A stretch of 64,000 nucleotides of DNA from Vitrella brassicaformis CCMP3155 (taxonomy: Eukaryota; Protista; Chromerida), in contig CDMY01000738.1 in NCBI GenBank assembly GCA_001179505.1, positions 1-64,000 on the forward strand, in the 5' to 3' direction. The notes under the pieces were generated by a model that was not told the DNA's origin, searched no databases, and worked only from the letters and a program-made list of their open reading frames with translations. The position numbers and the translations under genes were made by a program. Below are positions 1,652 through 49,700 of the stretch, in pieces. How positions within the stretch are numbered: position 1 is the stretch's first letter; the number at the start of each line of letters is the position of its first letter.

Positions 1652-3412
1652 ATGGACAGTAGCCACGACGCCCCGGCTCCCTCCAGAGGTGGGCGCCAAG
1701 AAGAGGCCGACAGCAACAAACAGCATAGCGAAGCGGTGCGCACAAGTCAGAGACCCACACAGACACACGAACCCATTGATGTGTGTCGCTGGTCAGGTGC
1801 CTGCTGATGACAGCGGCGCCAAGAAGCGTAGACGCGTAGACATCAGCCATACTGCTGCTATACTGCTGCTGCTGGTGGACACAGTGGAGGTACGCAAAGC
1901 GTCGGCTGCCGTTGGTGAACTGACATATCGTCATGGCCCTCCTGTGCTGTGTGGTGCCTTCAGGTGGCTCGATTGGTGCGAGTGGTGCTGCGGCAGCGAC
2001 ACAGCAGCAACAGGGAGGTGCCAGCTCACTGTCGGCAGGTCTGACGGCCCCCATGCAGCACCCCCACCAGCAGCAGCAGCAGCAGCAGCCCCAGCAGCAG
2101 CAGCAGCAGCAGCACCCCGTGTGGTACGTCTGCGCCCACCGCGGCAGCGATTTTCTGCTGCGGGATGTGCTGCGTCTGAGGACGACCTGCAACTGGGCCA
2201 GAGGCCTCTTCGGAGCACCTCAGCTGTGGCAGCGGCTCAGCCACTCGCTCAGCACACAGACGGGGCTGCGGCGGACGGCCAACGGACAGCAGCTGCTGAC
2301 ATTCGACGACCAGCAGATGGGCGAGGGTGACCTGCTGGCGGCGCTGTGTGTGACGGAGGCGGGCGGCTGGAGTGAGATGAGCGAGGCGGTCAAGCTGGCG
2401 GGGCAGTGCGGCAACTGCCAGCTACCTGTGAGGCTCACTGCGGGCGATCTGCACCAATACCCAAACAAGACGGTAAGCCAACCGAGTTAGGGAGCGAGGA
2501 TGGCTCTCACTCGGTGTGTGGTGTGTTGATGTGTTGTGTGTGCAGGCGTATTTGGCCGCTCTCCGTGTGTTGGCTCAGCTCAGGATGGTCGGCCCCCACA
2601 TCCACTTCGGCAGCGGCGTGGCCTTTCAGCTGTTCTTGCGCGGCAACACACTTCGGGCCATCAAGGACCAGAATGGCTACGAGATCAACATCGACCCGCC
2701 TCTCCCTCCCAACCACCTCTACCAGCAGCACCGACAGCAGCATGACCCGCCAGTCCGCTGCGGCATCAACTATTCCCCGCTGTCGCCCGGGGGCTGGCAG
2801 TCGCCGCATAGTGGTCACTACCCGTCAGTGTCGTCGTGTGTTAAGAGCATCGTCATCCGCCACTTCAAGGGGACTCACCAGGCCAACACCACGAACAGCC
2901 ATTCTATCGACAGGTGAGGCCGGGCATCACTCTTGTGTTGGAATGGTCACATCACATACAAGTGTATGTTGTGTGTGTGTGTCAGGCATGCTGACAACAG
3001 CTGGATGGACACTCTACTGACACAGTCATCCCACACACTAGTAGAGGGATGCACCACCACAGCATCGTACCGCTCCACGACCCGCTCCACTTACCGTCGT
3101 CTCGTCCTGACCGACGCCAGCCACTCGTTCGTCGCATGGATCATCGTCTAGGATCTGCACATCAATAATGTCGGTCAGCCCAGCACGGCACAGCGAGGGA
3201 GAGGGCGCACAAGCGAATAATCATACATACAACACTCACTCTCATCTCGGTCCTCTGCTGTCATTCGTTTGCAGTGGATGTGTACATCTACACGACCGAG
3301 TCGGCTGTGTCTGGTGTGGGTGGCGCCTTCCAAGGACCGCTTCCCAGTGACCACTCGGCTGGCGCGTACGGTGCTGGGGGCCGTCATCTCAGCCAGGATC
3401 TTCGGCCAATAG
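1652..3412 (+). pseudogene. Family A copy A1 (F-box-like N-terminus, poly-Gln, KKRRR motif); disrupted
   Basis: Six exons colinear with A2. An 11-nt duplication (catactgctgc/tatactgctgc, 1848-1869) shifts the frame relative to A2. TAG at 3149-3151 lies where A2 has CAG. Confidence 0.75.
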
Positions 3413-4203
3413 ACACCTGAGGTATGTCTGCATCAAACACGATTGAGACGAGCAGATGATGCCCGGACGAGGTACCAATGCTGTCCGTTCTATCCATGTG
3501 TGTGTCAGGCTGGGCGGCGGTGTTGGCCTTGGAGCGATCCGCCCGACAGATTCACTCTTGTACAGTCGCTGCATGAATCTGTGGGTGGTAGATAGAGGGG
3601 CGCGCGGGGGGTGGGGCACTCGCTTTCGTGTGCCGTGTGGTGCTAGACAGACGTCTGCATGTCTTTGCTTGCAGTGAGTGAGAGGAAGCGTGTGCGTGTC
3701 CGTTGCGCGCGTTGTGCACATTGGCGTCTGATGGACGGATGTATGTGTTCGTGTTGCTGAATGCCTGGCTGTCGTTGCGAACGAATGGGCTTAGGTGATC
3801 ACACGAACCACAACGCACCACCAACACACACATATGAGCTGTGCACACAAGGGTCTCCATCTGCCTGCCTGTGTGTCTCTTTTGACGCCCGCACCCTTGA
3901 TGCGGCGTTTGTTCTCGTACAATACAGTAGGCAGCGATGCCTGGAAGCCAGCCAGCGCTTTCACGTCACCCACGGACACACACAATTCACTCACGCACGC
4001 CCGAAAGCAGGTAGAGGGCCCGGTGCAGTCAGTCACTGTCAGGCAGATATCGATAGACGGGCAGACAGGCGGATGGTGGTCAGAGATAGGTGGGCGGATG
4101 GACGTCGGATCGGATGGATACCGATCGATCGGATCGATCTGCATCATTGCATTTGTATACGTATCTGTATGTGTATGTGTATGTGTCCCCGATCCATGTT
4201 GTG

Positions 4204-4209
4204 TACGTG

Positions 4210-4240
<31 letters not shown>

Positions 4241-4243
4241 GTA
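4204..4243. repeat. (ATGT)n microsatellite, one example of the many (CA/GT)n, (CAGA/TCTG)n, (GATG)n and (CAG)n tracts across the window
   Basis: Directly visible gtatgtatgtatg.. run; a similar tract lies at about 50525-50585. Confidence 0.9.
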
Positions 4244-5063
4244 AGTCTGATCGATCGAGGAGAGAGTGATTTGTACGGATCGGATGGGCGCGGGTTAATT
4301 GCGGTGCGCAGACGTGTGCGCGTGTCACTCACTATATATAACGAGAGATATCAATTGACTGACTGGCGCCGGCGTGGGGTTTGGCTGACTGACTGACTGG
4401 TTGGTCGACTGATTTGATGGATGGATGCATTTGGACCAACTCTGGCACTCATTGCCTCACTCAGACTCTATTGAGTGAAGAAAGCGATGGCTTCTTTGCA
4501 ACAAAGAAACGCACCCACAAGATCGAAGCAGCGGTTGATAGCACGAAGCTTCGTATGTACTTCCCGGGTAGGCGAAGTCATCGGCCTACGGGGGAAGCTG
4601 GCGGGGGCGAGTATTCTCGCCGAAGCTCGCATTAATCTGGCGAACAGATTGTCTGATGCCTCCACACTCTCATCACCATCATCGGTGAGACCAAAAAACC
4701 TCTCCACACATTCACTCAGTAAGCCGGTGCGCTACGCCTTCCCATCAGCGAGGCCAACTGAGGGAGGCAGGCAGGCAGACAGATGATGCATGACAGATGG
4801 AAACGACAGGCAACACATTCCCTTCCCTCCCTGCGTGGCTGTGCGGTGTGTGGGCTGTCAGATCTGACGGTGACGGGCTGAGTGAGAGGTCGGCTGCGGC
4901 GGGCAGCACTGAGTCGGGCTGCTTCTTGATGGCGATGGCTGACAACACAACTCACACACTGAGCAGTGAGTCGGCAGACTGAGAGCACAGGCACACTGAT
5001 GACTGCACCCCATCTCGCTGTGTGGCTGCTTCCTTGGTGCAGGTGGTTGACCGTGTTGGTCAG

Positions 5064-6776
5064 ATGGACAGTAGCCACGACGCCCCGGCTCCCTCGAGAC
5101 GTGGGCACCAAGAAGAGACCGACAGCAACAAACAGCATAGCGAAGCGGTGCGCACAAGTCACAGACCCACCCACACAGACAGACACACAAACCCATTGGT
5201 GTGTGTCAATCGCTGGTCAGGTGCCTGATGATGACGGCGGCGCCAAGAAGCGTAGACGCGTAGACATCAGCCCTGCTGCTGGTGGTGGGCATAGCGGAGG
5301 TACGCAAAGCATCGGCTGCTGTCGATGGACTGCATATCGTCATGACCCTCCTGTGCTGTGTGTTGTGTGGTGCCTTCAGGTGGCTCGATTGGTGCGGGTG
5401 GTGCTGCGGCAGAGTCACAGCAGCAACAGGGAGGTGCCACCTCACTGTCGGCAGATCTGACGGCTTTCAACATGCAGCACCCCCACCAGCAGCAGCAGCA
5501 GCAGCACCCCGTGTGGTACGTCCTCGCCCACCGCGGCAGCGATTTTCTGCTGCGGGATGTGCTGCGTCTGAGGAAGACCTGCAGCTGGGCCAGAGGCCTC
5601 TTCGGAGCACCTCAGCTGCGACAGCGGCTCAGCCATTCGCTCAGCACACAGGCGGGGCTGCGGCGGACGGCCAACGGACAGCAGCTGCTGACATTCGCCG
5701 ACCAGCAGATGGGTGTGGGTGACCTGCTGGCGGCGCTGTGTGTGACGGAGGCGGGCGGCTGGAGTGAGATGAGCGAGGCGGTCGAGCTGGCGGGGCAGTG
5801 CGGCAACTACCAGCTGCCTGTGAGGCTCACTTCGGCCGATCTGCACCGATACGCAAACAAGACGGTAAGCCAACCGAGGGAGGGAGGGAGAAGGGATGGC
5901 TCTCATTCGGTGTGTGGTGTGTTGATGTGGTGTGTGTGTAGGCGTATTTGGCCGCTCTCCGTGTGTTGGCTCAGCTGAAGATGGTCGGCCCCCACATCCA
6001 CTTCGGCAGCGGCGTGGCCTTCCAACTGTTCTTGCGCGGCAACACACTTCGGGCCATCAAGGACCAGAACGGCTACGAGATCAACATCAACCCGCCCCTC
6101 CCTCTCAACCACCTCTACCAACAGCACCGACAGCAACATGACCCACCAGTCCGCAGCAGGATCACATATTCCTCGTCCACGGGCTGGCAGTCGCTGATTG
6201 GGGAGGCTCGGGTCTACTCGTCTGTGTCATCGATGGTCAAGAAGATCATCATCGACCACTTCAACGGGACTCACCCCACCGTCACCACTCACTACCGTAT
6301 AGTCGACAGGTGAGGCGGGGCATCACTCTGTGTGGGCATTGTGACGACACACGAGTATGTGTTATGTGTATCAGGCATGTCGACAACAGCCGGCTGCACA
6401 GCATCATGACACAGTCCCCTCACACACCAGTGGAGGGATGCACCACAACCGCATCATTCCGCTTTGCTGCCATTTTCGCTGACCGTCGTTATCTCGTCCT
6501 GACCAACGCCAGCCATCCCTTCGTCGCATGGATCTACATCCAGGATGTGCTGCACAACACTGCTCAGCCCAGTCCGGCACAGCGAGGGGGAGGAAATGCG
6601 CCACTCTCATCTCTGTCCTCTGCTGTCATCCATTTGCAGTCGCTGTTTGTGTCAGGACGACCGAGCCGAATGTGTCTGGCGTGGGTGGCGCCTTCAAGGA
6701 CCGCTTCCCAGTGACTTATCGGCTGGCGCGTGTGGTGCTGGGGGCCGTCATCTCAGCCGTGGTCTTCGACCAATAG
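5064..6776 (+). CDS. Family A copy A2, uncharacterised F-box-like protein; last intron donor mutated
   Basis: Exons MDSSHDAP.. / VPDDDGGAKKRRRVD.. / ..LLRDVLRLRKTCSW..ANKT / AYLAALRVLAQLKMVGPHIHFG..HDPPVRS.. / HVDNSRL..HPFVAWI / ..TTE..FKDRFP..*. The donor at 6563 reads CTCAGC where paralogues have GTCAGC/GTTAGC. Confidence 0.7.
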
Positions 6777-8229
6777 ACAGCTGAGGTATGTGTGCATCAA
6801 ACACGACTGAGACGAGGAGAAGACGAGTACACGACAAACCAATGGTGTCTTTGTCTGTCCATCCATGTGTGTGTCAGGCCGGGCAGTGGTGCTGAAATCG
6901 AAGCGATCCGCCCGACAGGTTCTCTCTGGACGGATCTCGTACAGTGTGGGTTACCGGTAGATAGAGGGGGGCCGGTGGGGACCTCCTCTCCGGCCGTGTG
7001 ATGTGCTCTCTGCTGTGGTACTGGCTGATGGATGGATGGATAGATGGTCTGCTTCCTTATGTCCACTTTTTGCTAACACCTGCCTGGCTGGCTCGCTTGT
7101 CCCTGTCTGTCGTGGTGCTGTCCCCTCCCCTCCCATTGCTCCCCTCTCCCACTGCCCCCACTCATGTGCATTGGCCGACCAGACCGGCGATATTTCAGTC
7201 GGAGAGATCGAGAACAGACAGCAGCGAGGGGAGATGGGCGGACAGAAGGCTAGGCAAGGCACACACACGGTGGGAGAATCGAAGTAGCCCCTCGGCGAGC
7301 CTTAACACTGACAGACAGACCGAGATGGTGTGAGCGTGGATTTGACTTGATCCGACTTCATTGACTGCATTTCTTTTGATGTGTGTGCCATGGCGTCAAT
7401 GTGTGTGTGTGGATGAACCTCAAGTTGGCCATACGCCAGCCGAAGCACTAGTAAATCGACGAGCGCAGGATCAGTTGACGCCCCTCAGCGTGAACGACAT
7501 CACCTCAATCTTAGAGACGTCTGACTCATTCAATTCACACAACAGATAGGGAACCCGGCGGTCTGTCTCTCTGCCCACACCGGCATCTGTTCTCTCTGGA
7601 TGGATTGATTCGATCAATGCACTTGACTGCTGATGCTCAAGCTGCCTCTGGCCACTTTAGCACAACCAACAACATTACAACAATCACGCCAACAATCAGG
7701 CCGCGACTACCGGGCCACCGACACGTGAGTGTCTCGACGGATTGGCGTATTGCTACCGCTAGTGGCTCGGTCCGTCGGAAGAGGGCGGGGGCGAGGGATG
7801 AAGGTATGGTAAGACAGCAGGATGAGCCATCGAGACATCGAAAGGGAGGCGAACACGGCACAAAAAATGTCTGCCAGAGCAGCACGCCATCACACCAATG
7901 GTCGGTCATAACAAAAACCCGACAAAGGCGCTCATTCTCCCTTTCCCTCTCCCAACGTCTACACGCCAGCATCTGGCAGCCCCCATCTGTCAATTCTGCA
8001 CAGCTACCTGGTCACTCGTCCACACACACAGACACTCACACACACACATCGCAGCCAGTCCATGCAGCACATAAGTGTCGTCAGCTGATCCCCACTGCCC
8101 CTCTGCTATGAATGACCCACCACACACAACAGCCGGCCTGACAGACACCACCATCACCACACACAGAGATCAGACACGAACACGGTCACAAAATCAGCCC
8201 CTCTTATCAATGAGTGCCATTCCCTCACC

Positions 8230-10274
8230 TCAGGCATTGAGAACTGCAGTCATTGTCACCCATGTGCCCCCATAGCCACTGATGCTTCTGATGGTGAAGC
8301 TGTCGATGTTGGTGCCGACAGGGACGGAGGTCTCGATGGAAGCACGCTGCTCAGCTGTCGTCCCGTCGACTCTCAGCTCCACACACTGCAGGCCCCTGAT
8401 GTGCGAGGTCACCGAGGAGAGGCTGGTGCGGACGAAGCTGCCGGCATCCTCCACACTATCGGGCACTGAAGGGGAGGGAACACACACGGCAGAAATGAGG
8501 ACGGAGGAACACAAATGGCCTCTTCTCTCAGCGTACGTGTCATTGTGAAACGAAGTTCCCTGATCGTCGGCAACTCGTTGGCCGCCCCCAGCAGCTGGTC
8601 GACACCGATGTGCCCCATCCACACCTCACCCACCTCTCTCTCACTCGCCAGCGCCGTCAACACGCCCACCCTTTCCTCACCCGACAGCCTGTTGATGTAC
8701 ACCCTCCCCAGCTCCTTGGGCATCTTGTCGGCCAGCAGCCGGGCGGCTGCACCACCCAGGTCGCTCGAGACATACAGCTGTGAGGCCTTGGGGAACGGCT
8801 GCATGTGGGCGATGATGGCGGGGTAGGGCGATGGGGTGTTGGCGCGGGGATGGAAGCCAGGGGCATGATTCTCGACGATCACCTCACGGCCTTGTCGGAA
8901 AGAGAGGCCGGATACAATGTCGACGGCCGATTCACTGGGGCTGCCGAGGTTGTCGGTGAGGCCATCCTCGGTGAAGATGTACTCCACCGATGAGGCCGTG
9001 TCTGCCAGCTGCTGGATCATGGTCTTGAATGAGGGTGAGGGATGGGAGGGGAGGGGAAGTTGGGGTGGTACAAGATGGAGAGGTCGAAGCCGAAACGGCT
9101 GGTGTTGGTGAGCGTGAGTGGGGCGTCCTGTCGGCAGCACGCGCCGACCAGCTGGTCCAGGGCCAGCAGTAAGGGTAATGTGGGGCGGCCGATTCTGTAG
9201 AACTCACTCGAGTGCAGCTCCTTGAGTGACCGTCGACAGCCCCGCGCAACGAGCACTTCCTGAAGGCAAGAATACATGCAAGAAGGACATCATGAGCCAA
9301 TCCACACTGTACATGTGTGTGCGTTGTAGTCACCTGAAGCTGCTCGATGCCCGCCGGACGCTACCTTCGACCACGATGGTGCCGATGCTCTCCAGCTGGG
9401 CGAGTGGCCCTCCCTGCTGCCCAGCAGGTGTCGCAGGGATGCGCTCGAACACCCTCGCCCATCCCTCATCCCTAAAGCTACCGTCCACACACTGCAACGA
9501 GCGGGACGAGCTGATGAGCTTGCCCAGGCTGCCGGGGAGCCACCCCTCCTGCCGCACGATGGCAAGTGAGGGCATCCGCCAGCCCCGGTAGGCCAGCACC
9601 TCATGGTCGCCTGTCAGGCCAGCGATGATGGTGAGTGCGTCGAGGGTGAGGGGCGGGTCGAGAGGGGCTGGGAGGGGTGGGTGTGTCCTCGCGACGCTCT
9701 GCCTCGCCGTGCCGGTCAGCCGAACGCCTCCCTCGATGGCGATGGTCTGCAGCGTCCCGCCGCACAGGTTGGCTGCCCGTCGGTCGGCGATGTGGCCCTC
9801 GATGACGGCCACAAAGACGTCGAAACACCAGCAAGGGAAGCAGAGAGGGTATTGGAGAGTGATGGTTGTGAGCTGTCTGAGGTATGTGGCCCATTCCTTG
9901 ACGAGGTCGATGGTGGCCCTCTGCCAAAACGACCGCTGGTCTTCGTCCGCCGCGCTGATGGCGAGGTGGTGCTGTTTGCGGGCCGCGTGTTGCCATGTGA
10001 GGGGCGGCAGCTGCAGCTGCATGAGCAGATGAATGGGGAGGAATGCCATGACGATGCTAAGGAGACCGGGCTGCACACAACCACACACCACACGGGACGG
10101 CAAGGGATGTGGGTATCCATCAGTGGATGGCCTCAGTGCGTGTGGTTGGCTCACAGGCGCATTCCCCCAGAAGCGTCTTTCCCTCTCAGCCCGACGCTGC
10201 CGCTCCTCAACGCTCTCGCCGCCAGCATCGTCACCAGATGCAGCCGATGAAGACGAAGCCGGTGCCTGACACAT
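8230..10274 (-). pseudogene. Family B copy B1 (F-box-like LLSIVMAFLP motif followed by LRR-like repeats); two frameshifts
   Basis: Colinear with B2. A 1-nt deletion near 9358 (GGT AGC G-T CCG vs GGT ACC AGC GAT CCG in B2) and a 5-nt excess near 9045-9056. The ORF track shows the protein split across frames (9330..10295, 9017..9277, 8409..9140). Confidence 0.75.
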
Positions 10275-11184
10275 ACGAGTCCTTTTGACCTGCACACATA
10301 CCCCAAACAGACACAGCCGATGTCCGTCTGGTGAAGTGCGCCGTCCATTGCCAGCGGTGCTGTGATGCGCCTCACCTTTCTATCGAATCCCATCCCTGTA
10401 GATCTGATTCAGCGGCTCACAGTAGCGGCTCGCTGCAATGAGAACTCCAATGTCTCCACTGAGGCGGCGACCGAGGCGGCTACTTGACCGAAGCTCACGG
10501 TCTCTCCCTGACGGACAAACACACACAGCCCAGGAGTGCGGCAACGATGGTGAATTCGCCATCTTCCTGCCCTCTCCGCCGCACCTCAGGATGGACAGAC
10601 GCGACGATTCTTCTCAGTATAACTCATCGATCTGAGGCGAAGCAAGCACAATGCGGAACCTCAGCTACCCCTCGATGGCTGCACAAGGGTGCTCGCCTCT
10701 CCTCGCCTCCCCTCCCTTGAGGTTTGTTTCTCTTCGTGAAACCGCTGCGGAGAGACAGGCTTTTTTCCATTGGATTGGTTCTGCTCACATGTTGGGAGGC
10801 CGCCCCACATGGGGGGGCTACACGAGACTACTATCCATCGACCTGGCAATGTATGTATCTACCTGTATATGTATTGTGTATGAGAGTAGGAGACGCAATC
10901 ATCGCATCCATTCATGAGTGTGTGCCTCATTGCGGCACGCCACCATACATTCCAAGCACTAACTAGTGTCAAATCAACTCGATGATACCCTACACGGCGA
11001 GAGACCTCACACACACATGTAGCCACCCACCCCGCCCACCCCATTCACTCACCCACACAGCGTCAAACCGATCCCTCGTCTCACATCAATGTGGACACAC
11101 ACACACACGCGGCAAGCAGGCAGGCAGGCCTGTCAGCTGACAACAATGCACACAGGATGCCAATGGACCAACACACCCATTCTC

Positions 11185-15128: not shown

Positions 15129-15373
15129 GCAGCACGATGAACGTTGATTCGATGATTTCTCCTCGTTCACAGTTGCGAGCTTAGGCTGCGAGCTCAGAGA
15201 TCTGAGCCGAAAAGGGTGCCATTGGTTCTGAGGTGCGGCAGTCAGAGGCGTTTGGTCGAGCAGGAGCATCCACGCAAGTCGTGATGGATCCGCCTGCAGA
15301 AGGTCCTCCCACGATTCGTCTGCAGAGCGAGTCGAGGACGCCCGTGGACAGATCTTCGTCCGCATCGCTCGGG

Positions 15374-19929: not shown

Positions 19930-19963
<34 letters not shown>

Positions 19964-33096: not shown

Positions 33097-33240
33097 ATCA
33101 CAGTGGATCGATCACCCATTCCCCATCATTGTCACTTCCACTCCTCTGCGGGCGAGAGGGCCACTCCATCTCGTGGATGGGGTGGATCGCTCATCGTACC
33201 CGCGAGCCGCGCGACCATCGTGGACGGATGGCGGCGCGGC

Positions 33241-36200: not shown

Positions 36201-36642
36201 CCCTCACGAACGATCTCACCTGGCCACACGGACGCACAAACGAACAAACAAACACGGCATATGCTGTATGTCAATGCCCCTCTTTTGGTGTATTTCGGTT
36301 GACCTGGTCCGAGGTCGATGAGGCCGAGCGCCTTGTCCGACGCACACACCAGCTGAGGGCGGTCACATGGCGTGGGCGACACCCTGCACAAACACCAGAC
36401 ACACCTCGGACAGGGGTTTCCACCCTCGTCTCTTTCGCCACCGACCGGGAGAAGCAGGCGCCATGAACCTGTCTGGTGTAGTTGTCGGGCTCCTCGTCTA
36501 CCGGCAGGCACCGCAGGCAGCTGTTGTCGAACTGCAGCGATGTCACCGACGCCGACGCCGACGAACTCATCTTCCGTGCGATGAGCGACACAGAGGGGAA
36601 GGTCCGCTGCACGATGGGCAGATGCGACGCACCACGGAGCAT
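33241..36642 (-). CDS. SELENOO: Selenoprotein O / protein adenylyltransferase SelO with C-terminal selenocysteine
   Basis: [105 protein letters not shown]. The last exon (33296-33241) reads ..PLLVT-TGA-SS-TAG. The N-terminus is Arg/Ser-rich, like a mitochondrial presequence. Confidence 0.95.
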
Positions 36643-36860
36643 CTACATCTGGGAGGCGTCAGCTTTGCTGCTTTACACGGAAGCATGCCAGCAAAGCTCG
36701 CGTCTTTCGCTCCCTGAAACCGCTCTCTCTTTGTCTTCAAGAAGCCGTCCTCTTCCAGGGCTTCCCCGGCATCTCGCTTTCGCCCATCGCCCTGTCTGTC
36801 CGGCTTCCGCGCTCTCACCCGTCCGCCTCTCTCAGCAGATCTGACGGCGATGCAGCACTA

Positions 36861-38197
36861 ATGCAGCACAACCAACAGCAGCCCGACCAGCAGCAGCAGC
36901 ACCCCATCGAGTACATCTTCGTCGGCCGCCGCACATTCTACCTTCTCAGCCTCAATGACATCCTGAGGCTGAGGAAGACCTGCAGATGGGCCAGAGGCCT
37001 CTTCGGAGCGCCTCAGCTGCGGCAGCGGCTCAGCCATGAGGTCAGCACACCCGCGGGGCTGCGGCGGACGGCCGACGGACAGCAGCTGCTGACCTTCGAC
37101 GACCAGCAGATGGGCGAGGGTGACCTGCTGGCGGCGCTGTGTGTGACGGGGGCGGGCGGCTGGAGTGAGATGAGCGAGGCGGTCGAGCTGGCGGGGCAGT
37201 GCGGCCACTGCCAGCTGCCTGTGAGCCTCACTGCGGGCGATCTGCACCAATACCCAAACAAGACGGTAAGCCAACCGAGGGAGGGAGGGAGCGAGGGAGG
37301 GAGAAGGGATGGCTGTCAATCGGTGTGTGGTGTGTTGATGTGTTGTGTGTGCAGGCGTATTTGGCCGGTCCCCGTGTGTTGGCTCAGCTGAAGATGGTCG
37401 GCCCCCACATCCACTTCGGCAACGGCGTGACCTTCCAGCTGTTCGACCACGGCAACAAACTGCGGGCCATCAAGGACGACATCGACCTCGCTATCGACAT
37501 CGACCCGCCCCTCCCCGCCAACGACTTCTTCCAGCAGCACCGACAGCAACATGACCCAGCCGTCCGCAGCAGCATCACATATGCCTCGCCTACGGGCTGG
37601 CGGTCGCTGACTGTTCCTTGGGACTACTCATCTGTATCGTTCTTCGTCAAAAACATCGTCCTCAACCACTTCAAGAGGTCTCACGAGACCAACGGGACTC
37701 ACCGTGAAATCGACAGGTGAGGCGGGGCATCACTCAGCTGTGTGGGCGCTTTGCGTGTGCACTGTCACGACACACACGAGTGTACGGTGTGTGTGTCAGG
37801 CATGTCGACAACAGCCGGCTGGACACCCTCATGACGCAGTCCCTACACACACCAGTGGAGGGATGCACCACCACCGCATCATTCCGCTTTGCCGGCCACA
37901 CTTGGTGTCGTCTCATCCTCACCGACGCCGGCCACCCCTTCGTCGCATGGATTGCCGTCATGTATGCTGCCTAACAACGGTCAGCCCAGCCCGGCACAGC
38001 GAGGGGGAGGAAATGCGGCGCCACTCTGATGCGCTGTGCTCTCCTGCCCTTCGTGTGCAGTGAGTGTTGAGGTCAAGACGACCGAGTCGGCTATGTGTGG
38101 TGTGGGTGGCGCCTTCAGGGACCGCTTCCCTCAGACCACTCGGCTAGCGCGGGCGGTGCTGGGGGCCGTCATCTCAGCCATCCTGTGCGGCCGATAG
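36861..38197 (+). pseudogene. Family A copy A3; lacks the A1/A2 N-terminal exons; frameshift at end of penultimate exon
   Basis: Colinear with A2 from about 36835 (cagcagatctgacggc). ATG TAT G CTG CCT AAC AAC G|gtcagc is 2 nt short relative to A5 and gives TAA at 37972-37974. Confidence 0.7.
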
Positions 38198-39290
38198 ACA
38201 GCTATGGGTACTGTCTGATAGAGGAACGACGGTGGGGTTGTTGAGTGGAGGGTGGACAGCAAGTCTCACTGACGGACTTCTCCCAAGACGACGCTTTAGA
38301 CAGCGCCGTGTTTTCCATGTCTTTCTTTCCACTCACACATACACACACCGTCCGTCCGTCCGTCCATTGCGCCACTCGTTCAATTGTTTTTGGGTGTATG
38401 GTTTCGCCCCCACGGCTGACCCACACGCACACACAAACACATCCGCAGGTGCCGTGAATGACGTCGTGGCAGCGTGTGGATGGATGGATGGATGTGTGTG
38501 TGTGGTGGGTGGCTCTGTGAAGACATACCGCTGGATATACAGCACATCGGCTGTCTGCGTGAATGGAGACCTGTCTTGAGTGTGAGTGTGAGTGTCTGTG
38601 TGTGTGTATGTGTGAGTGGACCGCAGCGAGTGAGCTGTGCTATCAATCGGTATTTCTGTGGGTCTCTCTCTCCCAATTGTGGCTCCCATTTTCAGGCGTT
38701 CACTCATTGCAATCAACAGCCAGGCATTCAGCAATACGGACACACACATCCCACACAGCCGTCCGTCAGACGCACGCACAAAATCCAACACGCCCAGCCA
38801 GCAAAGGCGTCCACCCTCTCTGTCTGTCTGTCTGTCTGTCTGTCTGGGCTCGCCAAGGGGCTCGGCAGCCACCGCTATGACACATCAGTTTGCCCACCGC
38901 GTGTGTGTGCCTTACCTTGCCTTCTGTCGGCCCCTCCCGTCTGCTGTCTATCCTCTTTCAGCCACTTGAGGAGAGGAAAAGGCCAGACGGCAGACAGTCA
39001 GCCAGCCAGACACACTGATGAGAGCAAACGCCGAAAGACTTACGGCAGTCGTGTGTGTGTGTGTGGGTGTGACGTGTCAGCCCCCCTCAGAGTCATCCAC
39101 ACAGACACCACACTCACACGGCCCGCAGCTATGCTATGCAGCACATAAGTGTCGTCAGCTAAGAATGGCCCCACTGCCTCTCTGCTATGATCGATCCCCC
39201 ACACACAATGGCCGGCCTGACAAACACCACCACCATCACACACACAGAGGTCAGACATGAACACGGTCACAGAAGTAGCCGTTCCCCACC

Positions 39291-41334
39291 TCAGGCATTG
39301 CGCGCCGCAGTTATTCTCAAATATGTGGCCGCGTAGAATATGCGCGTGACACTGAAGCCCTCGATGTTGGTGCCGTCAGGGAAAGAGGCCTCGATGAAAG
39401 CACGCTGCTCAGCTGTCGTCTTGTCGATATACAGGTCCACACACTGCAGGCCCCTGATGTGGGTGATCACCGACGAGAGGCCGGCGCGGACGAAGCTGCT
39501 CGCGTCCTCCACATCATTGGGCACTGAAGGGGAGGGGACACACACGGCAGCAGTGAGGGCGGACGGACACAAATTCTCTCTTCTGTCGGCGTACGTGTCA
39601 GATCAAGACGCTGATCGAGGCGTAGCGTCTTGATCGTCGGCAATCCTTCAGCCGCCTCGGCCAGCTGGTTGACGTCTACCTCTCCCATCTGCACCGTACC
39701 CACCTCCCTCTCCCTCCCCAGCGCCGTCAACACGCCCACCTTCTCCTCGGCACCCGACACCCTCTCGATGCACACCCTCCCCAGCTGCTTGGGCATCTTG
39801 TCGGCCAACAGCCGGCCAGCTGCACCGCCCAGGCGGTTGCGGACAGACAGAACTGAGGCTTTGGGGAACCGCTGCAGGTGGGCGATGACGACGGGATGGG
39901 GCGATGGCGTGTCGGCCGGGGGATGGAGGCCAGGGGCATTCTCGACGACCACCTCATCGGCCTTGTCGAATGAGAGTGTGGATGCGATATCGATGGCCGC
40001 TGGGCTGGGGTCGCTGTGCGAGTCGGTGAGGCCGTCCTGAGTGAAGATGTACTCCACCGATGTGGCCTGCTGTGCCAGCTGCTGCATCATGGTCTTGAGT
40101 GGGGGTGAGGGGCGGGTGGGGAAGTCGGGGTGGCAGAAGATGGAGAGGTCGAAGGTCCAATGGGAGGCGGTGGTGAGCGTCAGTGGGGCGTCCGGTCGGC
40201 AGCACTTGGTGACCAGTCGGTCCAGGGCCAGCAATGTGGGCAACTTGCGGCTGATGGCGTAGCGGGCAGAAAAGTGGACGTGCAGCTGCTTGAGAGAACG
40301 CCGGCAGCCCCGCGCAACGAGCACTTCCTGAAGACGACAACACACAAATATGGGACATCATGAGCCAACCCCACGGGCGCTGCTGTCCTGCCCTTTGTGT
40401 TCACCTGTAGCCGCTCGACGCCCGCCGGATCGCTGGTACCTTCGACCACGATGGTGCCGATGCGCTCCAGCTGGGCGAGTGGCCCTCCCTGCCGCCCAGC
40501 AGGCGCCACAGGGATGTGCTCAAACACACTCGACCACTCCCCACCGTCAAAGCTGCCGTCGACCTGCCGCAACGAGCGGGACGAGCCGATGTACTGGCCC
40601 AGTCTGCCAGGGCGCCACCCCTCCTGCCGCACGGTGGCGAGTGAGGGCATCAGCCAGCCCCGGTCGACCAGCTGCCGATGGTCGTATGTCAGGCGGCGAT
40701 GGTCTCGAGTGCGTCGAGGGTCGGGGGCGGGTCGAGAGGGGCGGGGAGGGGAGGATTTGTCTGTGTGATGCTCTGCCTCGCCGGGCCGGTCAGCCGAACG
40801 CCTCCCTCGATGGCGATGGTCTGCAGCGTCCCTCCGTTGAGGTTGGCTGCCCGTCGGCCGGCGATGTGGCCCTCGATGATGGCCACAAAGACGTGGAAAC
40901 ACCAACAAGGGAAGCCGAGAGGGTATTGGAGAGTGATGGACGTGAGCTGTCTGAGGTATGTGGCCCATTCCCTGACGAGGTCGATGGTGGTCCTCTGCCA
41001 AAACAACCGCTGGTCTTCGTCGGCCGCGCTGATTGTGAGGTGGTGCTGTTTGCGGGCCGCGTGTTGCCATGTGAGTGGCGGCAGCTGCAGCTGGATGAGC
41101 AGATGGATGGGCAGGAAGGCCATGACGATGCTAAGGATACCGGGCTGCACACAACCAGACAGCACACGGCGCGACATGTGGGTATCCATCAGTGGATGCC
41201 CTCAGTGCGTGTGGTTGGCTCACAGGTGCGTTCCCCCAGAAGCGTCTTTCCCTCTCAGCCCGACGCTGCCGCTCCTCATCGCTCTCACCACCAGCATCGT
41301 CACCGGGCTGAGCATTAGAGGAAGAGGCCACCAT
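39291..41334 (-). pseudogene. Family B copy B2; single frameshift
   Basis: ATC GCC -GC CTG ACA vs B1 ATC GCT GGC CTG ACA: a 1-nt deletion near 40694 gives TGA at 40691-40689. The homology continues in another frame (LTYDHRQLVDRGWLMPSL, ORF 40180..41070). Confidence 0.72.
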
Positions 41335-42124
41335 TGTGGTGGGTGAAGCAACCTGCTACAAATACCCAACGCACACAAACACGGCCGACATCCGTCTGGT
41401 GAAATGCGCCATTCATTGCCAGCGAGGCTGTGATGCGCCTCACCTGTCTATCGTCCACAATGATGGCTCTTGATCTGATTCAGTGGGTGCAATGAGAACT
41501 CCAATGCCTCCTCTGAGGCCGCTAATTAACCACTGCTCACGGCTCTATGACGTCCCTCGCTGACGGACAAACACACACAGCACATGAGTGCGGCACCGAT
41601 GTGAATTCGCCTTCTCTCTGCCCCTCCGCGCACCTCAGGATGGACAGACGCGACGATTCTTCTCAGTCAACTCATCGATCTGGGGCGAAGCAAGCACAAT
41701 ACGGCGCCTCGGCCGCCCCTCGATGCTGCACAAGGGTGCTCGCCTCCCCTCCCTCCCCTTTCCGATCTGCGAGCTCGCACACCAATGGTGTCCTTCCTCT
41801 TCTGATGAGATCTCAGCGTGTCATCCTCCCGCCCCTCTCGGCAGGCTGAGCCCCGTTCAGCCCTCCCCCTCGACAATTGCCCCTCGACGACATCGATGCC
41901 ATTCGCCCAGCGGCATCAGCAAGAGCAGCTATGCCATCGAGATCTGTCACGCATTCATGTGCCGGACTCGACGACACCTGACCGGCCGATTCAATCAGCC
42001 GTCAGGTCGGTATGTCGGCTGCCTTCCACAAGCAAAGCACTTCATGAATGCGTCATCCACACTGTCAGCGGTTGTGTGTGCTCTTTCCTGTCTGTGTCTG
42101 TCTGCAGTTACTCTTGCGTCAGCG

Positions 42125-43507
42125 ATGACTCAGCCTCGGCCCCGCAGCAGGAGCAGCGACCTGGACTCGCCCGTCGTCAACGGCGAGGCGGTCCGCTGCA
42201 TCTTCGGTGACTCGCGAGTTCGGCTGCTCAAGGTCAAGGACGTCGGTAGCCTCAGAGTGGCGGCCCGCCACCACAGCCTCGTCGACTTCCCTCCCAATGC
42301 ACTCCGCGCACGCCTCACCCACTCGCTGCATCGAATTCGGCTCGCCGACGGCTCACGGCTCAGCACAGTGCTGGCCTTCGACACCCAGACAGTGTCAGAG
42401 CCACGGGTGCTGCTGGCGGCCGTGTGGCTGGTGGAGGAGCAGAAGTGGGACGAGATCGTCGACGTATCGCGGCTGGCGGCGCACTGCGGCCGCTGCATTC
42501 TGCCGGTGCGGCTGACTGCTGACGACATTAACAGACACGCCAACAAGACGGTGAGACGCACACACAGGGGCGGGAGGGCAGAGGAAAGGGCCTTGTTCAT
42601 TCTTCTCTCTCTATGTGGTCGTGCGGGTGTATGCGTCGCTTCCCCGTGTGTTGGCTCAGCTCAAGATGGTCAGCCCTCACATCCACTTCGGCGACGCCGT
42701 GACCTTCCAGCTGTTCCAGCACGGCGGCAGAGTGCGGGCCATCATGGACGAGGACGGCTTCGAGCTGACCATCGACCCGCCCCTCCGTCCCAACCACCTC
42801 TACCAGCAGCACCGACAGCCACATGACCCACCCGTCCGGAGCAGGATTGGATATTCGCCGCCCACGGGGCCGCCGCACACGGGCTGGGTGCACCCGGGTG
42901 CTCGTGACCACGCGTCCATATCGTCGTTCGTCAAGACAACCGTCATCAACCACTTCTCGCGGACTCAGCAGCACAAAAGCACTGGCGGCCTCATCGACAG
43001 GTCAGGCGGCGCATCATTCTGTGTCGGCACTGTGACGACACACACGAGTGTATGCCTTGTGTGTGTGTCAGGCATGTCGACACCCACCGGCTGCACACCA
43101 TCATTACACAGTCCCCACACACACCAGTGGAGGGATGCACTACAAGTGCATCGGACCACTTCGCTGCCGGCTACACTTACCGTCGGTATCTCGTGCTCAC
43201 CGACGCCGGCCACCCCTTCGTCGCATGGATTGAGATCTGGGAGAACCCCTTCGACGGTCAGCCCAGCCCGGCACAGCGAGGGGGAGGAGGGTGACAAACC
43301 CAAGGAGGCACATAGTCTCATCTACTGTCCACTGGTGTCCTCCCCTGTCCTTCATTTACAGGGGATGTCCGCATCCACACGACCGAGTCGGCTGTGTCTG
43401 GTGTGCGTGGTGCCTTCAAGGACCGCTTCCTTCAGACCACTCGGCTAGCGCGGGCGGTGCTGGGGGCCGTCATCTCAACCAGGATCGTCGACCGATTAGG
43501 CATATGA
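42125..43507 (+). CDS. Family A copy A4 (MTQPRP.. subtype); first intron acceptor mutated
   Basis: Four exons colinear with A5. The acceptor at 42624-42626 reads CGG (paralogues CAG/TAG). An in-frame CAG 33 nt downstream could rescue the frame. Confidence 0.65.
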
Positions 43508-44906
43508 CTGAGGTATGCATCAAACACGACTGACACGAGCAGAAGATGTCCATACAGACGAAAAGTTAACAACGGTGTCTATCTTTCCGTGTGTGTGTCA
43601 GGTTGTGCGGTGGCGATTGACATTGGGAAGAGCACTGCCGGCCGCATAGGCGGCTGCAATGGTGCACACACATCGTCGGGTTTTCCTATTGTTCACTCTC
43701 TGTCCATCTGCCGGCTGCTTGCTTCGCTCCCAGCATCTGCCACCTGCATCGAGTCTGTGTCGCTGCCGGCGACCAAGATCCCAGCCCATCTTTCAGTGGG
43801 CGTGGCGCTGCTGGGGATGAGCCGTCTTTTGTTCTGTACTGCCTTCTCTTCCGAGCCGCTCTCGGGCTGGGGCTTGCTTGCGAGACTTTTCGACGGTCGT
43901 CAACGTCTGAGTGTGTGTTGATGAGTGACTCGTTAGCTGTACAGATTGACGGACGGACGGGGGCTGCCTGATGCTGACGTGTGAATCGATGTTGGCAGGG
44001 AGGGAATGTCGAATGACTGTCGATACACTTAGTCAGGTCAGCCAAGAGGTATCGATCACTTGGTCAGGCACTGAATGAACACCGGCACCCATACACACAA
44101 GACAGACAGACAGAGACACTTGCCTACATGCACCCACAGCTGCCCACACCGCATACCACATAGTCTCGCGCACAAACCAAATAAGAAACACTCTGGAAGT
44201 TCCCTGCACGGACATCCCTATCTGCTTTTCGTCGTATCGTGTGACGTCAAATGCTTGATCAAGCAGACTGACACGGGTGCACACACGGCGTTACTCTCTG
44301 TTTGGGGCTAGTTTGGGTGGCTGCACAGGCCGAGTCAAAATGAGCAGGCGATTGTCTTGATCGAGTCATACCATTCATCACAAACACACACACAGACACA
44401 CACGCCGCCATCGGCTGAATCAGACAGCGCGACCTCCCTAAATCATCCATCGCCAACACGCATACCTGGCGATCCATCCGCCTGTCATTCCACTAAGAGC
44501 TGCACACATGAGATGAGTGAGTCTTGTCTTTCGCTCGATCATCCCCGCCGCTGCCTCTCTCGCCTGTCTGCCCAGCTCTTTGTCGGTGACCCGGCTGTGT
44601 GAGTGCGAGGGACGGAGGGAGGGAGGGAGGGGGGGAGGGAGGGAGGAAGGGGGGCAGAAGACCCACACAGGCAGCCAAAAGTGGAACGCACGGGTGGATG
44701 GATTAATGGATGGGTTCGTGGCCGATACGATCTGGTCATCATATCGAATCAACTAAGTGGGTCATGCAGAGATACACACCCACATGGACACTCACATGCA
44801 TGAGTGAGCTCTACACATCTATTCCATCCATGCCTCCATCCATCCATCCATCCATCCATCGTCCACCCGCACAGCCGAGCTACATCGGCCGCACCCCCAG
44901 CCACAC

Positions 44907-47856
44907 TCACGTATCTGACATACACAACACACAACAGAGAGACAGGGAGGGGATGCGCGCGTATAGATCGGTCGGTGAGGCTGGCTGGCTGTCTGAGTGG
45001 GTCCAGCTGGGGATGGTCTGCCTGTCTCTCACCTGGTGTGCGGCGCTCGACAGACAGGGTTCTGACGAGCATGCTGACCTTGCACAGACCGGTGCCGACC
45101 AGCTGCGCCAGGAAAGGCTGCTCAACGCGACGAGGCGACCCAAAAGTCATCTTGATCTGAGTACTCTTGTGGCCCTGCCGACCAGAGAGGCGCAAAGCAG
45201 ATTGCCCAGCAGCCATCTGTCTGTCTGTCTGTCTCTCTGTCTGTCTGTCTGTCTGTGACTTTTTCGTTGAATGTGGTCACCATGTCCATCACGCGGTTGT
45301 AGAATGTCTCGAGCTGGTCATCCGCCAACTTGTCTGAAACAGCAAACGAACAGAGCACCGACACGGCGATTAGCTCCCACTGATTCCCGTCCCCCCCTCC
45401 TTACCCCCCACATCAACATCAACATGCACTTCCTCGATCGGCGGCAGCTTCGTGGTGTCCTGGTCCCACAGACAGGGGCTGCCGTCATGGTGGATGGGTG
45501 TGTTAGCCGACAGGCTGAGACCCAGATACGACAGGCTCCTCTCCCCCCGCCCCCTGGTCACCCGCGCCGTCTGCAGCCCCTCCAGGAAGCGCCACAATTG
45601 ACCAAGGGGTGCGGTCAGGGTCTCACCCCACCAGTGTGATACGACGATACGCGCCAGGCTGGGCATGTTGGAGGCGATCTCCACTGCGCGCTGAATATTG
45701 GCGTTGCTGGCCAGTGCCTTGTGCTGCAGCTCCAGGGTGTGGGCGGCGGCGAATGCGTCGTCCCTGATGGCGGCGGGGGTGGTCTCGTCATCATCGTCAT
45801 CAGGGTCGACCTTGGCGAAGTCGACGCCGTAAGTCACGGTGCCGGCAGTCTTGGCGAAGCTGCCGATGAGCTTCTGGGCAGAAGCGGTGCCGCTCCTGCT
45901 GCTGAGCGAGAGGAGCTCCGCGTCAATGCGTCCATATGTGCCGTCGTCGGTGAGTGCGAAGACCTCCTCCCAGCCTACCTCGGGAGCCGCAACGGCCTCA
46001 CTGATAGCACACGAAGCACAGACATGTGTTGCGCTGTCCGTCATCATGCTCTCTCTTTCTGCATCCTTACATGAAGCGGGCAGCGCTCTCCGACCACACC
46101 ACAGTATCGTGATCATCATTCATGTCCCTCACGGTGATCTTGAGCTCACGAATGGACCGCTTCGCGCCCCTCGCCACCATCACCTCACGCAGCCTGTCGA
46201 CCCCGCTCCTGTCAGTATCCACCTCATCCATAGATACACCTCGGAGTGTGTGCAGCGCCGCCAGCGACTTGCCGTCGGCAGGCAGCGCACTCAGCAGATC
46301 GGCCGTGGCGGCGAAGTAGATATGCTTGAGGTCCAGCACCTCAATAGCCTCACAGCCGCCAACCCATGCCTTCAGGCCGTCCATCTCGTGAAACCATGAC
46401 GGATCCAAATAGGTCCCGACGATGAGCGTCGTGACGGCAGGGGTGCGCCACTGGCGGCCCACGCGAGCAGACCTGCAATCGCTGGGGATGTTGTCGACCG
46501 TCTTGAGTGCCGGGAGGTGGATGGGGGCGGTGGGTGCAGGGGGCAGAGCAGACCCGGGGGGAGGGGAGGGGATGCGAATGCTGTTGTCGAGGGTGACGCT
46601 CTCGAACGACAGCACCTCCAATGTGCCGTCACCAGCCGACTTGCCGCTGTCATCAGTTTGCCTTGACGAAGCAGCAGCTGCCGCAGCTGTCTCCTCCCCT
46701 CCCTCCCTCTTCCGCCGCTTCTGTTTGGCTGCGATGGCCGCTCGGCCGCTGGCGTGGCCTTCTACCAGCGCATTCCACGTCCCCAGACACCAATCCACCT
46801 CGCAATCCTCGGGGTAGCGGTGCTTGATCTCTCTGATGTTGGTCGCCCTCTGCCCCCACCTCTTGCGCCACGGCCAGTGGCATGGCCGCCGACATACGCC
46901 TGGCCTTGTCGTCCTCACAGTCGATGACCGGGTTGGTGTAGCTGGCGGCCGACTGGGTGAAGAGGCGCGTGCCGAGACGCTGTCGGTAGGGCGTCAGCTC
47001 CCAGGGCTGCAGGTGGCCGAACACGTTGGAGAGCTCATCACGCGACAGACGGCGACGGGCCTGGGGGCAAAGAGAGAAGGCGTTAATACGTTAAGGTCGG
47101 TTTGATGTATCAGGGCTATCATGGTGTCATTCTCACCGGTCCTTCGTAGACGGAAGGTGGGATGCTGCTCCGATGCACCAGACGATACGATGGTCGCCGC
47201 ACCTGTGACCAGCACATGCGATGGACTGGACACGATGCTCTCGTCTGAATCTTTTGAGTACATGATGTGTACCTGTGGCTGTCGGTCGGTCTCTGCAGCT
47301 GCCGAGCTATTGGCTGGTGGCGGCGTGGGGGCGGCCGCCAGAGCATCCATGGCTCCCGAGAGGCCCGACTCGACAGACGACAGCTGAGTGAGGGCGGCGT
47401 TGACAAAGGACTCCAGAAAGGACAGCTGAGTGTGCACCAGCAGCGACTCATGGGACGATGCCTACGACCGAAGCGCACCAAACCATGTGCCATGACCTGC
47501 TGCCCACTGCGGACTCTGCGTGTACCTCGGCAGGGTGATTGGCAGGGTCCAGCTGATTGATCTCCGATAGACGAGCACCAACCTGATGCAGCCACCGAGA
47601 GATCAAGGGAAAGAACCATCAACACAGCGAAAGAGAGTGTGGCGTTGGGCCTGTCAGGGACATCAATCATATCATACCTTCGAGTGGAGCTGCCGCAGCT
47701 GGTCCAGGCCCTGCTCCACACGCGCCGCGTGCTCTTTCAACTAAACACAGCACACAGCACACAACACAGAGCACACAACATGACACAAGAGCCGTTGGAT
47801 GGGAGGTGCTGGCTTGTCTTGTTCGTCAGTCCGCCATTCACCTGAGCTACATCCAT
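44907..47856 (-). pseudogene. Family B divergent copy B3 with N-terminal coiled-coil-like extension; +1 frameshift; 3' end uncertain
   Basis: Exons MDVAQ/LKEHAARVEQGLDQLRQLHSK/VGARLSEINQLDPANHPAE/LSFLESFVNAALTQLSSVESGL.. then ARRRLSRDELSNVFGHLQPWEL (F-box-like). RYPEDCEVDWCLGTWNALVEGHASGRAA is similar to B1 QYPLCFPCWCFDVFVAVIEGHIADRRAA. The frame switches near 46860-46870. Confidence 0.65.
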
Positions 47857-48362
47857 GGCGCCGATCACTTGTTGCTATCAATGGTCCGCATGAACGGCGA
47901 ACAAGCCTGCAATCATCCAGAACAGAGAGAGCCAGATCAGATCAGACCGGCGGAAAGTATTGTGAAAGCGCCGTTTCTCGGTCTGAATTCTCATTTCTAT
48001 GCTCGTGTGTCGCCATCTCCCTGTGAGCCCTCGACTCGAGCCCTCCCGCGCCATGCGCTCACCTGGTCAGTAGCCACGGCAAATCGCTCCTCGTGTGCTG
48101 GCGATGGAAAGCCAGCCACAAAGGGGACCCCAAACAGCAAAACAGCAGAAATTGATGAAATGGATAATCTATAGGGTTTTCTGGGGTTGCAGGGTATGAA
48201 CCCAGCACTCCTTTCCCGAGAAAGGCTAAGTTGCTTCATTGCGTCAGATCGGTAGGTGGGCTGCCTTCTCACAAGCAAAGCAATTCATGAATGCGCCATC
48301 CACACTGTCAGCGGTTGTGTGTGTGCTCTTTCTTGTTTTGTCTGCAGTTACTCTTGTCCGCC

Positions 48363-49700
48363 ATGACTCAGCCTCGGCCCAGCAGCAGGAGCAGCGACCT
48401 GGACTCGCCCGTCATCAACGGCGAGGCGGTCCGCTGCATCTTCGGTGACTCGCGAGTTCGGCTGCTCACGGTCAAAGACGTCGGCAGCCTCAGAGTGGCG
48501 GCCCGCCACCACAGCCTCGTCGACTTCCCTCCCAATGCCCTCCGCACCCGACTCACCCACTCGCTGCATCAAATTCGGCTCGCCGACGGCACACGGCTCA
48601 ACACCGTGCTGGTCTTCGACGCCCAGACGGTGTCTGAGCCACGTGTGCTGCTGGCGGCCATGTGGCTGGTGGAGGAGCAGACGTGGGACGTGGTCGCCGA
48701 CATACTGCGGCTGGCAGCGCAGTGCGGCCGCTGCACGCTGCCGGTGCGGCTGACTGCTGACGATATCAACAGAATCGCTAACAAGACGGTAAGATACACA
48801 CACACAGGGGCAGGAGGGCAAAGAGAGGACCTCCTCCATCCTTCTCTCTCTCTCTCTCTCTCTCTTTTGTATGTGTGGCGCGTAGGTGTATTTGGCCGCT
48901 CCCCGTGTGTTGGCTCAGCTCAAGATGGTCGGCCCCCACATCCACTTCCGCGACGGCGTGACCTTCCAGCTGTTCGACCATGGCAACACACTGCGGGCCG
49001 TCAAGGACGAAGACGGCTTCGAGATCGATATCCCCCCGCCCCTCCCTCCCAGCCACCCTCTTTACCAGCAGCACCGACAGCAGCATGACCCGCCCGTCCG
49101 CACCAGGATCGACTATTTTGCGCCTCTGGGCTGGCGGTCGCTGACTGTCCCTTGGGACTACTCATCTGTGTCGTCGTCTGTCAAGAGCATCGTCATCAAC
49201 CACTTCTGGTGGACTCACTAGATTAACTCCACTGCCCGTATGATCGACAGGTGTGGCGGGGCGTCACTCTTTGCGGGCATTCCGACGTCACACGAGTGTA
49301 TGTTATGTGTGTGTGTCAGAGATGTCGACAACAACCGGCTGGACACTCTGCTGACACAGTTCTCCTACACACCAGTGGAGGGATGCACCACCACCGCAAC
49401 ATACCGCTCCACTGCCGGCTTCCCTCGGCGTCGCCTCGTCCTGACCCGTGCCAGCCACCCCTTCGTGGCGTGGATCGCCGTCACGCACCTGCTGGGCGAC
49501 AACGGTTAGCCCAGCCCGGCACAGCTAGGGGGAGGAAATGTGCTCCCTGTCGTTCCTTTGCAGTGCATGTTGAGGTCTTCACCACCGAGTCGGCTGTGTC
49601 TGGTGTGGGTGGCGCCTTCAAGGACCGCTTCCCTCACACCACTCGGCTGGCGCGGGCGGTGCTGGGGGCCGTCATCTCGGCCATGATCTTCGACCGATAG
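48363..49700 (+). pseudogene. Family A copy A5; premature stop
   Basis: ..NHFWWTH-TAG(49219-49221)-INSTARMIDR|gt. The frame and donor continue past the stop as in paralogues. Confidence 0.75.

Follow-up and report, generated by a model that had tools for sequence, protein, structure and literature searches.

Lineage-specific expansions of F-box superfamilies are known from nematodes and plants, in which the genes form tandem arrays, evolve by birth-and-death and include many pseudogenes. A different kind of gene cluster is represented by the paired nucleotide-binding leucine-rich repeat receptors (NLRs) of plants, such as RGA4/RGA5, immune receptor genes which lie head-to-head, retain the same partner and orientation from copy to copy and show co-phylogeny. 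Here, we analyzed a gene cluster of a chromerid, a group of free-living photosynthetic relatives of apicomplexan parasites. It is located in positions 1–64000 of contig C738 of Vitrella brassicaformis CCMP3155 (the window hereafter), whose assembly comprises 72.7 Mb in 1064 contigs. Within the window, two gene families, designated A and B, are found next to each other as repeated convergent pairs. A preliminary description of this DNA had interpreted such pairs as a linked two-component module, for example paired adaptors of Skp1-Cullin-F-box (SCF) ubiquitin ligases, or as a toxin-antidote-like selfish cassette. Our results suggest that the window is most probably a mixed cluster of two unrelated, Vitrella-private multigene families, in which the A> <B alternation is a by-product of block copying and not a conserved functional pair.

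Both families resemble the F-box expansions of nematodes and plants in several respects, including hundreds of copies, clustered arrays, rapid divergence, frameshifts and stop codons, and local block duplication. On the other hand, the host is a chromerid, A and B are unrelated to nematode FBA/FTH and plant FBA/kelch proteins, and the C-terminal domain of A has no recognized fold.

Based on self-BLASTN and protein searches, the window (58% G+C, with short GT..AG introns) contains five A copies, all on the forward strand, and three B copies, all on the reverse strand, in the order A1> A2> <B1 ... A3> <B2 A4> <B3 A5>. The order and strands are those given in the preliminary description, B3 being placed by BLASTP and the other copies by self-BLASTN. 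Full-length proteins (P numbers below) are annotated proteins obtained from the searches, and the exons of the window were searched singly, without joining them into spliced models. The copies are as follows.

1227..3420, forward strand: A1, family A; annotated as P0009 (464 amino acids) with extra 5' exons; located by tblastn, translations and self-BLASTN.
2053-2472 and 2546-2917, forward strand: core exons 1 and 2 of A1; the homologue of the last exon (~3290-3410) is shortened.
5064..6776, forward strand: A2, family A, apparently intact; annotated as P0013 (449 amino acids) with extra 5' exons; tblastn 100%.
5064-5150, 5221-5319, 5379-5864, 5942-6310, 6373-6570 and 6639-6776, forward strand: exons of A2.
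8233..10307, reverse strand: B1, family B (F-box/leucine-rich repeat (LRR)); the annotation ends early, P0085 being an N-terminal fragment of 297 amino acids.
9330-10295, reverse strand: N-terminal exon open reading frame (ORF) of B1, 321 amino acids, with the F-box-like motif LLSIVMAFLPIHLLMQLQLPPLTWQ.
~8538-9035 and 8233-8469, reverse strand: C-terminal exons of B1, from tblastn with full-length paralogues.
36861..38197, forward strand: A3, family A, intact; exact match to annotated P0004 (337 amino acids), four exons.
36861-37265, 37355-37716, 37800-37908 and 38060-38197, forward strand: exons of A3, with GT..AG introns seen in the sequence.
39294..41334, reverse strand: B2, family B; annotated only as an N-terminal fragment of 188 amino acids (P0088); 1-nt deletion at ~40693.
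39294-40345, reverse strand: remaining exons of B2, from tblastn with full-length paralogues.
42125..43498, forward strand: A4, diverged family A; exons at ~42125-42550, 42630-43001, 43070-43180 and 43367-43498.
45370..47060, reverse strand: B3, diverged family B; F-box-like exon LSRDELSNVFGHLQPWELTPYRQRL from ~47048, LRR ORF 46067-46918 and C-terminal ORF 45370-46119.
48363..49700, forward strand: A5, diverged family A; in-frame TAG at 49219-49221 in exon 2.

Self-BLASTN revealed that A1 (1238-3611) and A2 (4651-6979) are 82.6% identical, that A3 (36829-38203) shares 77–81% identity with both of them, and that A4 (42000-43712) and A5 (48242-49900) are 78.7% identical. The regions of B1 (8025-10713) and B2 (39098-41759) share 79.8% identity. 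The remaining relationships are much more distant, consistent with the earlier view of A4 and B3 as strongly diverged members. A4 and A5 show 35% identity to A3 in exon 1 and 54–66% in exon 2, and no DNA-level match was detected for B3 by self-BLASTN. B3 could be aligned colinearly with the full-length paralogue P0086 (24% identity over 250 amino acids, E 2e-7, BLASTP), and several intermediate genomic loci were matched by both B1 and B3 queries. Thus, B3 is a true, distant member of family B. The two families had been considered unrelated to each other, and a profile–profile comparison agrees: no similarity between the A N-terminus and B was detected by hhalign. With regard to geometry, the tail-to-tail arrangement described previously applies to A2/B1, A3/B2 and A4/B3, but it is only half of the picture. 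B2 and A4 are head-to-head neighbors with ATGs ~790 bp apart, and B3 and A5 are also head-to-head, with roughly 1 kb between their starts.

To place these copies in their genomic context, we compiled lists of loci for each family, which comprise ~150 scored candidates per query, and all family counts are lower bounds. Family A has at least 215 loci (the union of the query lists; each query yielded ~150 scored of more than 300 candidates found). A near-invariant motif of A, HRQxHDPPV, gave 142 matches when back-translated, compared with 0 for the reversed control. For family B, ~112 B1-type and ~109 B3-type loci are among the matches listed, 8 of them shared, which gives ~213 in total. Most loci of both families reside in single-family arrays. 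B-only arrays occur on C246, C638, C454, C389, C164, C238, C770 and C718, with no A match there among the matches listed, and A-only arrays occur on C351, C409, C391, C528, C336, C617, C666, C399 and C302, with no B match there among the matches listed. A member of the other family was found within ~5 kb of ~15 of the ~213 B loci and of ~17 of the at least 215 A loci, also among the matches listed, so that in each family over 90% of the listed copies lack a partner nearby. Such a distribution disagrees with an obligate module, whose partners would be adjacent in most copies.

Adjacency was counted from the coordinate lists, and an A-B junction was defined as a gap of at most ~5 kb. Among the loci listed, 18 junctions were identified, which involve ~15 B loci and fall into 12 regions; 4–6 would be expected from random gene order, an expectation based on the ~22,800 genes that the Vitrella genome paper is said to report. 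Although the raw number is in excess, the regions reduce to approximately five subfamily pairings (A3-type/B1-type, A4-type/B3-type, a mid-divergence type on C887 and C694, and two mixed ones), for which there is no excess (P 0.4–0.7). Orientation is not fixed either, as can be seen from the junctions themselves.

Head-to-head junctions (9): C738 B2/A4, B3/A5, 107380/109550 and 115020/116460; C404 18225/19707; C451 66780/67949; C298 22835/24090; C887 50884/51837; C694 11665/12573.
Tail-to-tail junctions (5): C738 A2/B1, A3/B2, A4/B3 and 117303/120854; C517 36188/41209.
Tandem junctions (~4): C404 start, C437, C468 and C982.

Some of these junctions are duplicates of each other; for example, C738:112-121 kb mirrors the A4-B3-A5 block of the window. 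After duplicates were collapsed, 7 head-to-head, 3 tail-to-tail and 3–4 tandem junctions remained. Considering that head-to-head junctions outnumber either of the other classes, the convergent geometry is not the rule, and the fixed orientation of an obligate module is not observed. In addition, each B of an alternating array is flanked by both kinds of A neighbor in any case. Comparison with the paired NLRs of plants leads to a similar picture. As in those genes, some A-B neighbors are arranged head-to-head and share a short upstream region, but the A-B orientation varies and most copies are unpaired.

The duplication history of the window provides further information about how these junctions arose. 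The preliminary description held that the A2-B1 and A3-B2 units had been duplicated together with their noncoding spacer. The units are indeed colinear and have similar identity (80.6% and 79.8%). However, BLASTN of the spacers (0.9–1.2 kb) showed that they are not colinearly conserved between the two units. Moreover, at least eight paralogues from other contigs share ~80% DNA identity with A3, which is no closer to A2, indicating that A2 is not its special partner. Only one piece is common to both spacers.

7200..7340, forward strand: conserved 3'-flank element of A genes, ~130 bp, with an inverted partial copy at 38893-38955 in the A3-B2 spacer.

An own-genome DNA search revealed 12 copies of this element, at least seven of which are just 3' of a listed A gene. 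The latter sit a few hundred bases beyond the respective gene, and the element could be part of a 3' untranslated region or a terminator element of family A.

Phylogenetic analysis of 52 family A exon-1 sequences, in which co-phylogeny was looked at on the A side only, showed that the state of having a B neighbor needs 8 changes, compared with 10.2 for shuffled labels (P 0.03). The paired copies are scattered between closely related unpaired ones, and a major clade of 18 rows lacks paired copies altogether. In the window, the B2/A4 head-to-head junction lies between the end of the B similarity (41759) and the start of the A4-type similarity (42000). Because it falls exactly there, this junction is a duplication breakpoint and hence secondary.

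Single disabling changes were detected in three of the eight window copies. In B2, a 1-nt deletion relative to B1 at ~40693 shifts the frame within the LRR exon (DNA alignment; the tblastn frame changes at 40692). In B3, the F-box-like exon is +1 out of frame with the LRR ORF, the shift being located in a G run near 46858. In A5, an in-frame TAG at 49219-49221 (a CAG-to-TAG change) replaces a Gln of the paralogues. Stops are also present in many copies of the families elsewhere in the genome, a pattern typical of birth-and-death evolution. B2, B3 and A5 are either young pseudogenes or assembly errors.

The same junctions might be read in another way, in which A and B have been inherited together since ancient times as a unit of two genes. 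These would most likely lie head-to-head and share a promoter of ~1–2 kb. Their products would then cooperate, for example as an SCF receptor heterodimer or as sensor and helper, and unpaired copies would be decaying or secondarily specialized. The nine head-to-head junctions, with 0.8–2.2 kb between starts, are in agreement with this idea, and head-to-head junctions account for 7 of 14 collapsed junctions, compared with 25% expected (P 0.04). However, this P value is lost once the number of testable orientations is considered. Besides the large majority of unpaired copies and the arrays that consist entirely of one family, the nearest relatives of the paired A copies are unpaired, the B2/A4 junction is secondary as described above, and both window B copies that have a head-to-head A neighbor (B2 and B3) are frameshifted. 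We therefore regard such a unit as unlikely. A co-regulated head-to-head pair that is restricted to a subset of copies has a comparably low probability. A more far-reaching version appears quite unlikely; it supposes that A-B began as one ancient head-to-head pair with a bidirectional promoter, was co-duplicated through the diversification of the families and acts as a heteromeric SCF recognition unit, most unpaired copies being relics.

Several observations nevertheless weigh against a by-product of block copying, and two of them, the excess of junctions and the co-divergence of partners, also favor the ancient unit. First, both the junctions (18) and the regions (12) are above random expectation (P 3e-7 to 0.02), the excess of the 12 regions being marginal (P 0.001–0.02). 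Second, 30–50% of copies are paired within the youngest clades, and the identities of partners co-vary at three depths (A ~78%/B ~65%; A 57%/B 39%; A 35%/B 24%). The pairing in young clades and the co-divergence of partners together indicate that an old co-inherited neighborhood is real, and some functional tie between A and B neighbors is possible. Third, very divergent partners beside arrays scored as unpaired could be missed by lists of ~150 scored candidates per query. Finally, errors in the assembly might account for the frameshifts of B2 and B3, that of B3 lying in a G run. For the junction excess, the co-divergence at three depths and the mild head-to-head bias, the best explanation is that a small number of ancestral neighborhoods were duplicated as blocks. 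Under this block-copying scenario, both families would follow a birth-and-death mode, in which tandem and segmental duplications add copies and decay is frequent, and the A> <B alternation would stem from the copying of blocks that carry one gene of each family. The linked two-component module proposed earlier is not supported, considering the predominance of unpaired copies, the small number of co-duplicated lineages, the varying orientation and the disruptions in B2, B3 and A5.

To investigate the possible function of family B, whose N-terminus had been described as F-box-like, we analyzed an AlphaFold2 model of the paralogue P0086, which was built with 44 paralogues (predicted local distance difference test (pLDDT) 90.8, predicted template-modeling score (pTM) 0.70). 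The model contains short helices at residues 39–44, 49–54 and 59–67, followed by regular beta/alpha (LRR) repeats to the C-terminus, and these three N-terminal helices span the motif quoted in the preliminary description. Thus, B is predicted to have a three-helix F-box fold directly before a substrate-binding repeat domain. Using Foldseek, we found that the best matches of the model are COI1, TIR1, D3/MAX2, FBXL2 and Dia2, with E values down to 4e-9. The top rows of VIA-align include FBXL17 (Z 9.5, model residues 30–325), FBXL2 (Z 9.3, 29–514) and Skp2 (Z 9.1, 22–328), and all three alignments begin at the N-terminal helices of the model (residues 22–30) and at the F-boxes of the matched receptors. 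Plain LRR proteins have similar Z scores (~9), but their alignments begin later in the model. Because of this tie, the F-box part is assigned from the aligned range and from which proteins rank at the top. The template-modeling scores (TM-scores) against the matched structures are low (0.25–0.42) because the curvature differs. The UniRef name of P0086 is "F-box domain-containing protein".

In predicted architecture, B is similar to the F-box/LRR receptors of the FBXL class (Skp2, FBXL2, FBXL17, TIR1, COI1 and D3/MAX2), with the three-helix motif placed directly before a curved beta/alpha LRR solenoid. Unlike these receptors, B is private to Vitrella, is present in ~200 loci, has TM-scores in the low range given above and is too divergent in sequence for the Pfam F-box, F-box-like and LRR models, none of which detected it; its Skp1 binding is a prediction. 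The Pfam F-box and F-box-like models gave no match at E<=0.1 in 44 members, nor at E<=1 in 10 members. When the B family profile was compared with PDB sequences, nothing significant was found, the best match being the LRR of a plant resistance protein (E 0.37). Relatives of B amount to 141 among 1.84 billion cluster representatives, and all named homologues of A and B are "unnamed" or "uncharacterized" Vitrella proteins without Pfam domains. In the Pfam scan of 44 members, one B-family member had a weak match to Skp1_POZ (E 0.0011).

Taken together, evidence from the fold, namely the three helices, the LRR solenoid and the F-box/LRR receptors as best matches, supports an F-box-like N-terminus of B, and we interpret B as a Vitrella-private family of F-box/LRR receptors whose sequences have diverged strongly. 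The B proteins (~550 amino acids) would combine a highly divergent F-box with a downstream LRR solenoid. The N-terminal three-helix motif would dock on Skp1 and the LRR arc would present substrates to the SCF ubiquitin ligase; both Skp1 binding and ubiquitin-ligase function are what we infer for this family.

This fold also bears on the suggestion that the A-B unit is a selfish toxin-antidote cassette which spreads as a pair. Some nematode toxin-antidote genes belong to fast-evolving private families, and A recurs next to B within the window, but only as a local pattern. The linkage is not kept, since most copies of each family are alone, the fold of B is that of an ordinary F-box/LRR receptor, and several copies are already broken. 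Neither the units nor the larger neighboring ORFs scanned contain transposon, toxin or nuclease domains, and no terminal inverted repeats of at least 150 nt were found. A cassette of this type is therefore extremely unlikely. A transposon origin was also considered and rejected: no transposase or reverse-transcriptase domains were detected in the family ORFs or in the ten largest neighboring ORFs scanned, and long inverted repeats are absent.

Family A is more difficult to classify. All 84 relatives found are Vitrella (or unnamed metagenome/transcriptome) proteins without domains. For P0004, an AlphaFold2 model that drew on 47 paralogues reached only modest confidence (mean pLDDT 61.7); pLDDT is ~80 for residues 180–337 and below 50 for residues 1–31 and 101–176, and residues 31–69 are helical at 54–79. 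Foldseek and a wide VIA-align search with this model found neither a solved fold nor an F-box match, the best hit (Z 4.7) being to generic helices, and a search of the ESM Atlas with the C-terminal part of A gave no usable match.

An F-box-like N-terminus had been claimed for A as well, and only faint traces of it could be found. Among Pfam families, PF12937 (F-box-like) is the most recurrent match of A members, and its positions 15–45 align in register on YLLSLDDVLQLRATCRWLRELF, the motif on which the claim was based. This match occurs in 4 of 47 members, with 14 bits compared with a cut-off of 24.3 and E values of 0.026–0.043, in a part where the structural model is unconfident. Library E values of 0.03–0.04 are not negligible given the prior hypothesis of a handful of F-box models. 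Furthermore, the language-model neighbors of the first 135 residues of A include two F-box clusters (0.90 and 0.88). We thus lean toward the view that the head of A is a degenerate F-box.

There is a considerable, if somewhat smaller, chance that A is not an F-box protein and that the N-terminal resemblance arose by chance, in which case the cluster would comprise the SCF adaptor family B beside an orphan family. In this regard, Pfam searches of single ORFs, of 23 and 47 A members and of 44 B members gave nothing over threshold, and a comparison of the A N-terminal profile with PDB sequences did not recover any F-box protein. When the whole genome was scanned with the two Pfam F-box hidden Markov models, 49 and 51 matches were obtained, 0 of them at the A or B loci listed. 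The low pLDDT over residues 1–31 and the lack of profile similarity to the B N-terminus point in the same direction, whereas the frequency and register of the PF12937 matches, their E values and the two language-model neighbors argue against a chance resemblance. The A proteins (~340–450 amino acids) carry a degenerate, possibly F-box-derived N-terminal motif, a private alpha/beta domain without a fold match in the C-terminal part and a conserved C-terminal helix. They might represent another class of SCF adaptors beside B.

Two additional observations concern the structure of A genes. Both Pfam F-box models weakly match G000:C268:134850-134921 on the reverse strand (E 0.18–0.44), ~650 bp upstream of an A exon 1 and on the same strand. 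The match may be noise or may mark an alternative exon for an F-box head. Some A paralogues have an intron 1 that stays open in frame, so that exon 1, the intron and exon 2 form one ORF of 282–356 amino acids; examples are L006 1051-1899 (reverse strand; G000:C437) and L002 970-2040 (reverse strand; G000:C528). Intron retention in such paralogues would add ~27 residues without a stop.

Several other features were noted in the window. Its longest ORF (51411-53612, reverse strand, 733 amino acids) lies downstream of A5 and was examined as a possible missing B partner; it is not B-like and has no Pfam match. Two direct copies of a 222-bp sequence, 246 bp apart and 98% identical, are present in positions 1–468. 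The ORFs 24665-25615 (forward strand) and 62342-63007 (reverse strand) show weak, sub-threshold Pfam hints of glycosyltransferase 61 and of a VWA domain.

Literature searches for F-box or LRR expansions of Vitrella found no description of them in the library searched. The F-box proteins of chromerids are difficult to recognize by sequence, as has been noted for Toxoplasma (PMC11570480). In Vitrella, ~200 loci of an F-box/LRR family are invisible to Pfam, and a comparably large family has a faint F-box-like head and an unrecognized domain. Together, the two families suggest a large repertoire of candidate ubiquitin-ligase adaptors with rapid turnover, both hidden and private to this species.

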